Source of the DNA: Pecten maximus
Lineage: Eukaryota
DNA: 64,000 bases
Reading direction: 5' to 3'
NCBI RefSeq assembly: GCF_902652985.1
Contig: NC_047016.1
Location: 17,608,001 to 17,672,000 of the forward strand
Made by a program: the position numbers and the translations under genes. Shown piece after piece: positions 36,663-38,789 of this stretch; within the stretch, counting starts at the first letter, position 1; each line of letters starts with the position of its first letter. Under the pieces are notes generated by a model. The model did not search any database and was not told the DNA's origin. It was given only the letters and a program-made list of their open reading frames with translations.

Positions 36663-38789
36663 ATGACGGAAAGTCTCGCAGATCAACTGAAGAACGTGAA
36701 ACTGAAGAAGTCGGCCGAGCCTATGAAGGACTTTTCCAATCCTAAGACCATGGGGTTCACCAGCGCCCAGGAAATTCGGGATTACGAGGATAAGGTACTG
36801 GACGTTAATACCGAGCGCTGGATACAGCTTCTCAGTGACGTCACATTCCCGACAGTCACGTGCCCTTTCACCCTCGATGATGCCAAACTCTTCATCGAGT
36901 GTTACAAAAGGTAAGATGTTTTGTACTGTGTCGCTCACGTAATTCTGGAATTTGTCGCCACTCTTACTATTTCATGAAAATTTTGAAGGTGGTTTTGGTT
37001 CTTGTTCAAAGTTTGAAGACTGGGACGTTTTACGAACAGTGTGCTCTGGAAAAGCATGATACTAAAAACTCTTCATATTTCTTAATTCTCGTGTTGATAA
37101 GGGGAAAATTGGGAGAAATTATTATAGTGATGCAGTGTTAACACATTACATATATATATATATCGATAAACAACAATAGTGCCTCAGAATAATGCCTCTG
37201 TAGCTGAACAGCAGTCTGTATAATACGCTTTTATTGTTGACTCAGGATATTTGACAACAAAGATGCTGAAACGACCATGATGACCGATTGGAAAGCTGCA
37301 TTGGCGTCAACTGAAAAGGAGCATTTGGCTGATCTCACGAAGAGACTAGACTCTGCCATGTCCATCTTCACCGAAGAGGATGGATGTGCATTCGTAAAGT
37401 TGTCTTCCAGGAGTGCTAAGGACGCGCCCATGTTACAGACGCGACTTAAAGATATGTATAAAGATGCTTTGGGAACATTCGAAGAAAACGAACAAAAACA
37501 AGAAAATACGAAAATAATATGTTTGCTTCAAGCAGCATTTGACGCCATGAGAGTCACGTGTGCCGATGAAGTCATTGATATGTTTGTACGAAGTGAACGA
37601 GTATATCAAGACCTCCTATTGGCTGCTGTGAATAGACCTGAAGTATATGATGAAAACTTTGTCATTAGGAAGTTTATTCCTATCGATGTCGACATGGAGT
37701 TCCGAGGATTTGCTTACAAAGGACAGTTAACCGCTCTTTCCCAGTACAACTATATGATATATTCAGAACGTCTTGTGGCAAAGAAGGAGGCCATTGCTAA
37801 GCGAATTCTTGAATTTTTTAACGCCTCTGTACAGCCAAAACTCTCCTCAGATAGCTTTCCACGGGAGTTTATCATCGACTTCGCTGTTTGTAATGTCGGT
37901 ATGTATTCATAATTTCTGCAGTCTGTACCACGAAGTGCCGTTTCTTATACTCGCATTTTCAACTTTGCCATCTATTATGCCACATTTATTGCCAAAACTG
38001 AATTTTGATATTATGATGTTGAAACCATTCGCGTTCGACAGAAAACTGATGTTCTGTTGTGAAAATCAACAATGAAAATGTAAAATTTAATGAAAATCTA
38101 ACGTTACAAAGGCCAAAATGAATCCATTTGGGAAGATATTGTAGTATATATACATGTAGTTCTGTTGCTAAATAGTGTATTAATCAACGGTAGATACGTC
38201 AGTAGTTTGAATGTCAGAGTAAATAAAATATTCATATTTCAGATAATTGTTTCCAAATAATATCAACAGGATCATAGCATATCACTCAAATCGAGTCTTG
38301 CTTGTTGGTCTTACCATCAATTTCAAAGTAACATAAACGGTGTATTTTCTTTTCTGCTTTAAATCTTGTTTGGGTATACTGTATATACCCAGGGAACCGC
38401 TTTACATGTGTAGTAGGTATTGTGACTATTTATCAAAATGACTAATCCACGGAGGGATTCTCCTTAGTTTCATTGCTTTTCGTTCTTTCAGTAAGATATA
38501 TTTCTACTGAATCTAGTTTTGTCATAAAGTAAACACCACATTATCCAATACACATGCTACTGATGTCTATACACGTTTTGCAGAAGCTGGAGAAGATTCA
38601 TGGAAACTCTGGGTTATTGAATTAAACCCATTTCTGTCGTCAACAGATGGTGCCATGTTTAGTTGGGAGCACGAGAAAAATCTTTTGACAGGAAATGACG
38701 GATTCCACTTCCGTGTTGTGCCAAGACCAAAGCCAGGGTCGCTGACAATGTTACCAACTAGTGTGAGGGCGATTTTAAAGGATTCCTAG
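36663..38789 (+). CDS. CDC123/D123-like (R2K clade) ATP-grasp protein with N-terminal WH2-like motif (3 coding exons, 368 aa)
   Basis: Exons 36663-36910, 37246-37898, 38584-38789; GT-AG, in phase, 1107 nt. Motifs AFVKLSSRSAKDA, SERVYQDL, EFRGF, LTALSQY, FIIDFAV, WVIELNPF and DGAMFSW parallel CDC123-family motifs (KLNWSxPKDA, EFRCFV, ISQR, DxNP). AATAAA lies at ~38914. Confidence 0.85.

Follow-up and report, generated by a model that had tools for sequence, protein, structure and literature searches.

The window examined here, a stretch of 64,000 nucleotides from the scallop Pecten maximus, carries on its forward strand a three-exon gene at positions 36663-38789, whose coding sequence of 1107 nt comprises 368 codons plus a stop. 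This gene is real, spliced and expressed. The coding part of exon 1 (36663-36910, +) covers residues 1-82 and 2 further nt, including a WH2-like motif and the start of a putative pre-ATP-grasp region, and is followed by a GT donor at 36911; its joint to exon 2 was found in four RNA runs. Exon 2 (37246-37898, +) is predicted to encode pre-ATP-grasp sequence, a RAGNYA domain and, of the ATP-grasp module, most of its kinase-like part; exon 3 (38584-38789, +) adds the last strand, which carries the ExN motif, and then the C-terminal region up to the stop codon. Two GT..AG introns of 335 nt (36911-37245, +) and 685 nt (37899-38583, +) separate them, each placed by the sequence and by RNA contigs. 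The reading frame is interrupted by a stop codon 12 nt upstream of the ATG. The 5' UTR covered by RNA contigs spans 36586-36662 (+), with contigs from X8 and X7 starting at 36586 and those from X3 and X11 at 36633, and the 3' UTR spans 38790-38942 (+), where two contigs end and where an AATAAA signal is present at 38914-38919.

Both splice joints are present in contigs from RNA libraries (four runs from at least three studies). One of these contigs, from X8, is 1408 nt long and is composed of the blocks 36586-36908, 37244-37897 and 38583-39017; because it spans all three exons, exon 1 with its WH2-like motif is in the mRNA. The gene model is also identical to the database protein P0001, a 368-residue entry named 'cell division cycle protein 123-like [Pecten maximus]', and the sequence searches were run with single exons or with this entry. 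The first-pass annotation of this DNA had described a clean three-exon open reading frame of 368 residues, and the coordinates, the GT/AG introns, the RNA contigs and P0001 all agree with that description. Its reading of the first 28 residues matches the sequence exactly, and its question of whether the N-terminal motif reaches the transcripts is answered by exon 1 in X8.

The CDC123-like ATP-grasp domain

Computational analysis of sequence and modelled structure shows that exons 2 and 3 correspond to a CDC123-type (R2K.1) ATP-grasp fold with a predicted catalytic set that is intact. The Pfam D123 profile (PF07065) matches P0001 with 70.6 bits (cut-off 24; E 1.7e-19) and matches all 36 orthologs (36/36); exons 2 and 3 each match it separately, exon 2 with 1.3e-11. 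An AlphaFold2 (AF2) model of the protein has a pLDDT of 88.5, and the ten best Foldseek matches to it are all Cdc123 chains (E 3e-15 to 5e-14), among them the human and S. pombe proteins, at an identity of only 19-20%. D-Ala-D-Ala ligases (Ddl) and RimK come next, while Pfam TTL is absent from the Pfam hits of the 36 orthologs at E values up to 10.

Members of the R2K group are recognized by two conserved basic residues in and after the RAGNYA domain's strand 2, with a spacing specific to each family (PMC4431377). The signature in the scallop protein runs from F132 to A143 (37391-37426, +), with the lysines K134 (37397-37399) and K141 (37418-37420) seven residues apart, which is also the K...R spacing in a canonical scallop CDC123 exon. 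Among 324 relatives position 134 is K in 87% and R in 11% (K or R in 98%), K141, R224, E234 and R236 are conserved in 100%, and R138 and S139 in 99-100%. The other putative ligands follow the same pattern. E234-F-R236 (37697-37705, +) makes up the kinase-like domain's conserved arginine strand, D294 (37877-37879, +; D in 99%) is the likely acidic Mg/ATP ligand of strand 4, and the ExN motif in exon 3 (+) consists of E313 (38619-38621) and N315 (38625-38627), each conserved at 99%. R236, D294 and the pair E313/N315 align to EFR, D and DFN of human CDC123. The CDC123/R2K ATP-grasp motifs that had been noticed downstream of the N-terminus are therefore borne out by the Pfam score, the Cdc123 fold and the retained catalytic residues.

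Canonical CDC123 exons of the scallop lie in a separate multi-exon gene on another chromosome (contig C7, 28.240-28.245 Mb), and one of these exons matches human CDC123 (8phd) with E 8e-8 and about 60% identity. For the window protein the match to human CDC123 is limited to the C-terminal half (E 1e-9), with a structural identity of 19-20%. Since a separate canonical CDC123 sits on C7, we consider the window gene a non-canonical paralog, as the first-pass annotation had also claimed. The two proteins have in common the R2K.1 ATP-grasp fold (8phd, 4zgn-4zgq; Foldseek E about 1e-15), two basic residues placed seven apart after strand 2, and the EFR and D...[DE]xN metal/ATP ligands. They differ in that the canonical protein has DxN where the window protein has ExN, in the clade-specific invariant motifs of the window protein (SSRSAKD, SER..QD and SQYN), in exon number (three against at least five in the canonical gene), and in the N-terminal WH2, which belongs to the window protein.

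The N-terminal motif and its predicted docking on actin

Residues S4-K28 (36672-36746, +) are best described as a 'long' WH2 motif of the WIP/verprolin type, an assignment supported by conservation, profile comparisons, AF2 and a complex model. The motif consists of an amphipathic helix (L5, A6, L9), V12, an LKK triplet (L14-K16, 36702-36710) and a DxSxP tail (D23-P27, 36729-36743). In the AF2 model residues 5-10 are helical and residues 19-30 are disordered. The first-pass annotation had made conservation in orthologs a check on this motif, and L9, L14, D23 and S25 are indeed conserved at at least 90% across the 36 orthologs. The N-terminal motif is kept at a mean identity of 25%. In the 324 relatives the frequencies are 94% for L/I9, 84% for L14 and 83% for K/R15 and, in the DxSxP tail, 83% for D23, 84% for S25 and 78% for P27. 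Because it is kept in the 36 orthologs and in far more distant relatives, the motif is no chance string. Some family members carry the WIP-type DRSAP letter for letter, and the textbook WH2 form LLxxIRxGxxLRK is found in fungal members.

The WH2 claim itself is supported by profile comparisons, with one correction. Pfam WH2 (PF02205) matches neither exon 1 nor P0001 nor any of the 36 orthologs at E values up to 10, and no other Pfam or NCBIfam profile matches exon 1. A genome-wide scan with Pfam WH2 also does not list the window exon, but this is a weak negative because only the best candidates were scored there. On the other side, the homologous N-terminus of the relative P0367 passes the Pfam WH2 cut-off (24.4 bits against 23.1) and that of P0323 reaches E 0.008. 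An HMM built from 129 N-termini of the family and searched against 4636 six-frame pieces matched the scallop Pfam-WH2 exons L023, L017, L018 and L019 (E 3.8e-5, 5.5e-5, 3.7e-4 and 1.6e-3), with the next unrelated match, where noise begins, at E 1.6. Profile-profile alignment with hhalign paired the family N-termini with WH2 over 24 columns at 93% probability (E 3.2e-7).

Compared with the 'long' WH2 motifs of WIP, verprolin and MIM, the scallop motif has the same amphipathic helix, LKK-type triplet and D-R/x-S-A/x-P tail, and the scallop's own exons of this kind are the best non-self matches of the family N-terminal profile. However, the known motifs sit in proline-rich scaffolds, whereas the window motif lies at the extreme N-terminus of a putative enzyme and scores below the Pfam WH2 cut-off. 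Moreover, spiralian members are one residue shorter than canonical WH2 between the helix and LKK, and two residues longer before DxSxP. Two other identities were considered and rejected: thymosin-beta, since the motif lacks a second C-terminal helix and has a WIP-like tail in place of one of the LKKTET type, and villin headpiece, which is a folded C-terminal domain, in contrast to a disordered N-terminal motif.

Docking on G-actin, which the first-pass annotation had proposed to check with a complex model, is predicted. Modelled together with actin, residues 4-18 are placed in the barbed-end cleft with an ipSAE of 0.74 in three runs against 0.02 for the best control, a result to be read as likeness to a WH2 rather than as binding because the model may recall solved WH2-actin complexes. 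In the benchmark, the ipSAE mark was reached by 51 of the 78 solved complexes and by 2 of the 108 mismatched pairs. Contacts agree at at least 76% between runs, and the pLDDT of the partner is 60-62. On the scallop side the residues predicted to touch actin are 4-6, 8-10, 12 and 14-18; on actin (mature numbering) they are F21, D24, D25, R28, Y143, G146, T148, G168, I341, I345, L346, L349 and T351. These predicted contacts match the published WIP-actin interface (structure 2A41), for which the course of the DRSAP tail along subdomain 1 has also been described (PMC7407642).

Spread of the fusion and earlier proposals

The combination of a WH2 with a CDC123-like domain was seen in molluscs, brachiopods, annelids, rotifers, basidiomycetes, Amoebozoa and Rhizaria, and some members of the family are without the N-terminal motif. 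Relatives of the protein include sequences from Arcella, Dracoamoeba, Physarum and Willaertia. In one relative, P0299, the CDC123-like domain is fused to a dual-specificity phosphatase. Since fungi, Amoebozoa and Rhizaria also carry the fusion, this architecture reaches beyond animals. The first-pass annotation had known of no characterised animal protein with it. Our literature search found no paper describing a WH2 fused to a CDC123-like ATP-grasp domain.

A second set of eukaryotic CDC123 homologs, one that evolves fast, was described in amoebae, Legionella and giant viruses, and its authors already speculated that such non-canonical homologs modify the actin cytoskeleton (Burroughs, Zhang & Aravind, 2015; PMC4431377). 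What the first-pass annotation proposed for actin had thus been voiced before, though not on the basis of a WH2: the 2015 paper mentions WH2 nowhere and includes no animal or fungal members (PMC4431377). That set and ours are alike in being non-canonical R2K.1 and in occurring in amoeboid eukaryotes, and they differ in the WH2 and the animal and fungal members, which are described only here; the Entamoeba, Acanthamoeba, Naegleria and Legionella sequences of the 2015 set lie outside this comparison. A further literature search, on CDC123 homologs as Legionella effectors, returned nothing later than 2015.

Possible roles of a WH2-linked ATP-grasp protein

How might these two parts work together? 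We propose that a CDC123-like (R2K.1) ATP-grasp enzyme uses its N-terminal long WH2 as a tether to monomeric actin and probably ligates an amino acid or peptide, and we regard this proposal as about evenly balanced between right and wrong. The WH2 helix (L5, A6, L9) would enter the hydrophobic cleft that actin forms between its subdomains 1 and 3, the LKK triplet would lie against D24/D25 of actin, and the DxSxP tail would run up subdomain 1 as in WIP. Between the WH2 tail and the enzyme's first helix lie only about seven residues, a short and conserved linker, and the catalytic domain would therefore be held near the actin surface. There, it would most likely spend ATP on activating a carboxylate, either of actin or of a protein that actin holds, to which an amino acid or short peptide would be ligated in the manner of TTL/TTLL and RimK. 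The chemistry of the ligase, its target residue and the group it would add are what we infer from that analogy and from the proposal of Burroughs et al. (2015).

TTL/TTLL and RimK belong to the same ATP-grasp superfamily, RimK and Ddl are among the fold matches of the window protein, and these enzymes, with the help of a dedicated substrate-docking element, attach amino acids to carboxylates on a protein of the cytoskeleton or the ribosome. They are nonetheless from another ATP-grasp clade and act on tubulin or S6; Pfam TTL is not matched here, and the ligase activity of the scallop protein is putative. Enzymes dedicated to the covalent change of actin include the actin cross-linking domain (ACD) of MARTX/VgrG1, NAA80 and SETD3, and in the ACD it is ATP that activates an actin carboxylate for amide-bond formation. 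Their folds are unrelated (glutamine-synthetase-like, GNAT and SET), and none is known to pair a WH2 with an ATP-grasp domain.

In weighing the proposal we counted in its favour that Burroughs et al. (2015; PMC4431377) reached the idea of actin modification independently. Counted against it were the Pfam WH2 null on the scallop protein and its orthologs, the shorter helix-LKK spacing of spiralians, the possible memory of the complex predictor and the family members that lack the motif. A bolder form would have WH2-tethered R2K ATP-grasp ligases writing a hitherto unknown covalent mark, an amino acid or peptide added to an actin carboxylate at the expense of ATP, as an ancient eukaryotic system kept in spiralian animals, basidiomycetes and amoeboid protists and lost in vertebrates, arthropods and yeasts. 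We offer this only tentatively, and it may well be wrong; such losses would explain why an actin mark was missed.

Alternatively, the protein could be an ATP-dependent chaperone or assembly factor for actin monomers or for an actin complex, with the WH2 as its client-docking element and no ligation at all. Canonical Cdc123 is an ATP-binding protein that promotes the assembly of eIF2 with no ligation shown, and we know of no ligase activity or product demonstrated for any R2K.1 member, the canonical protein among them. The ligase product of R2K.1 proteins is so far a prediction (PMC4431377). The nearest solved relatives are moreover Cdc123-eIF2gamma complexes, and the same catalytic residues can serve plain ATP-Mg binding. 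However, retention of the R2K lysines, the arginine and the ExN at 99-100% over deep divergence is a better fit to catalysis than to mere binding, and the identity to Cdc123 is only 19-20%, so that we find a chaperone unlikely.

It could also be that actin is bait, cofactor or address rather than substrate, in which case the enzyme would modify another actin-binding protein or would be switched on or off by actin. Yersinia YopO, which uses actin as bait, and ExoY are precedents. In the complex model the WH2 fills the barbed-end cleft and leaves other faces of actin free for partners (see also PMC7407642), and the phosphatase fusion in P0299 hints at roles of a signalling type. Against this, the short conserved linker between WH2 and enzyme would keep the active site near actin, and no partner is indicated by the present data; we judge this explanation decidedly unlikely.

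Improbable, in our opinion, is that the N-terminus is a linear motif that resembles WH2 and does not bind actin, such as a basic targeting signal or a regulatory helix specific to the family. WH2 motifs are short and low in information content, and the Pfam null on the scallop protein would fit such an explanation, as would two further searches with residues 1-34: phmmer against PDB sequences found only a tau repeat construct (E 0.55), which we take as chance, and the ESM Atlas gave no usable match. Yet the conserved helix hydrophobics, the L-K/R-K and the D-x-S-x-P are the positions that contact actin in WH2 structures (PMC7407642), the reciprocal profile matches fall solely on genuine WH2 exons, hhalign agrees at 93%, fungal members carry LLxxIRxGxxLRK, and the complex model passes its controls. 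Finally, that the window gene is the scallop's canonical CDC123, an eIF2 assembly factor, as its database name and the Pfam D123 match would suggest, is almost certainly wrong and was rejected, given the canonical exons of the C7 gene and the low-identity match of the window protein to human CDC123 over its C-terminal half alone.

Tubulin is decorated by a well-studied family of ATP-grasp ligases, and we know of no equivalent for actin. The guess made by Burroughs et al. in 2015 lacked anything that tied these proteins directly to actin; a WH2 fused to the catalytic domain supplies such a tie across animals, fungi and amoebae, and turns speculation on actin modification into a hypothesis that can be tested at the bench. 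If ligation by an actin-tethered enzyme is true, it would mean a new post-translational modification of actin together with its writer, and if the mark is on actin itself, an 'actin code' as the counterpart of tubulin tyrosination, glutamylation and glycylation. Should the domain be non-catalytic, these proteins would still be a new class of WH2 protein, with a new job for the Cdc123 fold. The database name 'cell division cycle protein 123-like / eIF2 assembly protein-like', borne by hundreds of genes, would also be corrected.

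Gene structure, expression and enzyme domain

The gene at 36663-38789 on the forward strand of the Pecten maximus window is real, spliced and expressed. From reading and translating the DNA, its three exons, all on the forward strand, lie at 36663-36910, 37246-37898 and 38584-38789, with GT..AG at both introns and a coding sequence of 1107 nt. An in-frame stop precedes the start codon by 12 nt, and AATAAA follows the coding sequence at 38914. The first-pass annotation had described this three-exon, 368-aa ORF and quoted its first 28 residues, which match our translation exactly. 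The best-matching database entry, identical to exon 2, is P0001 of NCBI, a 368-aa protein named 'cell division cycle protein 123-like [Pecten maximus]'; sequence searches were made with single exons or with P0001. Both splice joints are present in Logan contigs of all four RNA-type runs aligned to the region (two of them recorded as RNA-Seq; at least three studies together). Since a single 1408-nt contig spans all three exons (36586-36908 / 37244-37897 / 38583-39017), the exon with the N-terminal motif is part of the mature transcript; a motif absent from transcripts would, by the first-pass annotation, have refuted its reading. Contigs and genome differ at nine places in the coding sequence, seven synonymous and two conservative (E264D, A363T), and none of the nine falls inside the motif.

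Other features of the region were seen in the same data. In one X8 contig, 4 nt are missing at 36629 and C is replaced by G at 36621, both in the 5' UTR outside the coding region and probably an allele. Parts of intron 2 (region 37869-38587) are covered in three runs by low-depth contigs that differ from the genome at many sites and by small indels; they are compatible with unspliced pre-mRNA or with carried-over DNA of other alleles, and the RNA contigs give no sign of an alternative exon there. Just 3' of the gene, at 38925-39500, contig depth, about 10-30 before, rises in all four runs to several hundreds or thousands, and the contigs show an opposite-strand joint (39017 / 39447) besides numerous loose ends; X8 and X7 contigs pass into this region from the 3' UTR of the gene, up to 39017. 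The region resembles an interspersed repeat that is highly expressed or present in multiple copies, perhaps with inverted arms. Near-identical short ORF pieces at 5329-5568 (+), 8387-8491 (-) and 35834-35986 (+), and beside an actin gene on another chromosome (scallop locus L012:565-669), look like an interspersed repeat family.

The fold of the protein is that of a Cdc123-type ATP-grasp enzyme whose catalytic residues are all in place and deeply conserved. P0001 matches Pfam D123 at 70.6 bits (cut-off 24), exons 2 and 3 also hit this model when searched separately, and the sister models R2K_2 and R2K_3 match more weakly. An AlphaFold2 model built on an alignment of 36 orthologs has a mean pLDDT of 88.5. 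The features by which Burroughs, Zhang and Aravind defined R2K.1 (PMC4431377) are all present, in line with the ATP-grasp motifs noticed at first pass: the basic residues in and after RAGNYA strand 2 (K134 and K141, 7 apart, the CDC123-type spacing also found in the canonical scallop CDC123 exon), the Arg strand E234-F-R236, the acidic D294 and E313-x-N315. In a family HMM alignment of 324 relatives, K141, R224, E234 and R236 are 100% conserved, D294, E313 and N315 99%, and position 134 is K or R in 98%. Such conservation at a mean column identity of about 25% speaks for an ATP-dependent active site that is functional.

The gene had been proposed as a paralog of CDC123, and a separate canonical gene in the scallop bears this out. 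This second D123 gene, on contig C7, has at least five exons, one of which aligns with human CDC123 at about 60% identity (E 8e-8), and they carry the canonical K-L-N-W-S-A-P-R, E-F-R-C-F and I-D-F-N-P-F. Because of this gene, and because the match of P0001 to human CDC123 is distant (E 1e-9, C-terminal half only), we regard the window gene as a divergent paralog: P0001 belongs to the R2K.1/D123 family but is not an ortholog of CDC123. It shares fold and K/R spacing with canonical CDC123, yet structural comparison gives only 19-20% identity; with the C7 gene at hand, we reject the eIF2 assembly factor CDC123 as its identity.

The N-terminal motif as a WH2

The first-pass annotation had seen in the N-terminus the layout of a WIP/verprolin-type WH2, and by profile criteria the motif is shown to be a long WH2. 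Direct searches found nothing of the kind: Pfam WH2 (PF02205) matched neither P0001 nor 36 orthologs with E up to 10, a whole-genome PF02205 scan listed seven other loci (five above cut-off) without exon 1 of the window gene, and residues 1-34 gave nothing useful by phmmer against PDB sequences or in the ESM Atlas. Taken alone, these negatives would favour a chance resemblance, but five further results overturn this.

The motif is one of the best-conserved stretches of the protein and is retained in the 36 orthologs (bivalves, gastropods, a chiton, a brachiopod, an annelid and rotifers), with L9, L14, D23 and S25 at 90% or more. An exhaustive profile search with an E limit of 1e-30 returned 870 clusters; among the 129 members whose match extends to the N-terminus, 122 have a loose helix and LKK pattern and 101 also the DxSxP tail. 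The textbook WH2 form recurs in many distant members: basidiomycete N-termini read M-S-L-L-x-x-I-R-x-G-x-x-L-R-K-V, then H-D-x-S-A-P, and in others the motif ends in D-R-S-A-P-I-L, as in WIP. The homologous N-terminus of one relative, P0367, reaches Pfam WH2 at 24.4 bits (cut-off 23.1; E 2.2e-5), P0323 scores E 0.008 and two more are weak. An HMM built from these 129 N-termini, 29 positions long and run against 4636 six-frame pieces of the window and 23 loci, found after its self-match the scallop WH2 exons previously located by Pfam (L023 E 3.8e-5, L017 5.5e-5, L018 3.7e-4, L019 1.6e-3, L020/L021 0.057), with unrelated pieces from E 1.6; its best targets are WIP/MIM-like motifs with L-K-K-T-V-T-N-D-R-S-x-P. 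Aligned by hhalign to seven scallop WH2 motifs, the family N-termini gave 93% probability (E 3.2e-7, 24 columns covering helix, LKK and DxSxP). The AlphaFold2 model has a short helix at residues 5-10 and disorder at 19-30, as would be expected of a motif that folds upon binding. The WIP/verprolin assignment thus stands at the level of the family, whose tests are the reason for calling the scallop N-terminus a WH2, while the scallop copy itself stays under the Pfam threshold.

As to the scallop WH2 exons themselves, L017, L018, L019 and L023 have the long form L-K-K-x-V-T-x-D-[RK]-S-x-P typical of WIP/verprolin and MIM, and L020/L021 are a tandem pair of short motifs, as in N-WASP.

Distribution of the fusion

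The fusion of WH2 and ATP-grasp spans a wide range of eukaryotes. Named members of the enzyme family come from animals (molluscs, Lingula, Owenia, rotifers), basidiomycetes (Mycena, Roridomyces, Favolaschia, Flagelloscypha, Atractiella), Amoebozoa (Arcella, Dracoamoeba, Physarum), the rhizarian Lapot gusevi and the heterolobosean Willaertia; many more are metagenome or transcriptome sequences without species names. No vertebrate, arthropod or nematode name occurs among the members listed, which are not a systematic survey. The motif is missing in a minority of relatives, for example Willaertia P0443 and also P0426, P0433 and P0442. A quick maximum-likelihood tree of 82 members, unrooted, with SH-aLRT as its only support measure and without a canonical outgroup, places the spiralian sequences in a single clade (support 100) and the fungal ones in another (99-100), which fits vertical descent inside each group. 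One relative, P0299 (668 aa), has a WH2-like stretch near its N-terminus, a CDC123-like ATP-grasp domain (44-382) and a C-terminal dual-specificity phosphatase (Pfam DSPc, 89.8 bits, 426-557).

Predicted docking on actin and a candidate activity

A complex model with actin, suggested at first pass, supports binding as a prediction. Residues 1-34 of P0001, paired with P0212, an invertebrate actin of 376 aa that is 97% identical to its query, a scallop actin exon, scored 0.74 in three of three runs against 0.02 for the best control, a mark reached by 51/78 solved complexes and 2/108 mismatched pairs; as WH2-actin complexes are in the training data, this pass speaks for likeness to WH2 and not for affinity. 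Contacts agreed between runs by at least 76%, at a partner pLDDT of 60-62. Residues 4-6, 8-10, 12 and 14-18 of the motif make the confident contacts, with F21, G23, D24, D25, R28, Y143, G146, T148, G168, I341, I345, L346, L349 and T351 of actin (mature numbering). They make up the hydrophobic cleft that separates subdomains 1 and 3, plus the acidic patch of D24/D25. A review of WIP gives the same surface for its WH2 in 2A41: L36, L37 and I40 of the helix sit in the cleft, K47/K48 are near D24/D25, and the 'long' tail (52-55) follows subdomain 1 and brings S55 close to the nucleotide cleft (PMC7407642). The WH2 of P0001 is predicted to bind the barbed-end cleft of the actin monomer.

Scallop actin genes and pieces occur in large tandem clusters (C4:9.26-9.33 Mb and C7:23.21-23.28 Mb; L008, L009, L011, L015, L016 and further places). 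The C4 cluster has at least seven near-full copies inside 70 kb. At C7, actin-like pieces with many exons are densely arrayed, and several of them contain internal stops. A typical scallop actin gene has one intron near codon 42.

How might such a protein act? The long WH2 would dock on the barbed-end cleft of an actin monomer and, because only about 7 residues part the motif tail from the first helix of the enzyme, the catalytic domain would be held against the front face of actin. ATP would activate a carboxylate at the actin surface, to which an amino acid or peptide would then be ligated, by analogy with the protein-modifying ATP-grasps TTL, TTLL and RimK. Possible targets are the acidic N-terminus of actin, its C-terminal carboxylate and side chains near the nucleotide cleft or D-loop. 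A rival to the ligase is a Cdc123-like ATP-dependent chaperone for actin. In a Foldseek search of the PDB the best ten matches are all Cdc123 chains (human 8phd/8phv and S. pombe 4zgn-4zgq; E 3e-15 to 5e-14); ranked below them are D-Ala-D-Ala ligases, RimK and one more ATP-grasp peptide ligase. Alternatively, actin could be a bait or cofactor while another protein gets modified. A third rival is that the motif does not bind actin at all.

The gene is already annotated and its family partly described. Burroughs et al. 2015 reported that amoeboid organisms have a second set of eukaryotic CDC123 homologs, one that evolves fast, and speculated that its members might modify actin-cytoskeleton proteins, in parallel to the tubulin ligases; WH2 is unmentioned in their text (PMC4431377). 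In the full-text literature we found no paper joining CDC123 with WH2, and none relevant joining WH2 with ATP-grasp. What appears to be new is the fusion with a WH2, how widely it occurs, and that animals and fungi have it. The observation of the gene is confirmed, its interpretation is supported in part, and the structural and evolutionary parts of the reading hold up well. An actin-directed ligase is a plausible candidate activity for this family, specific and directly testable.
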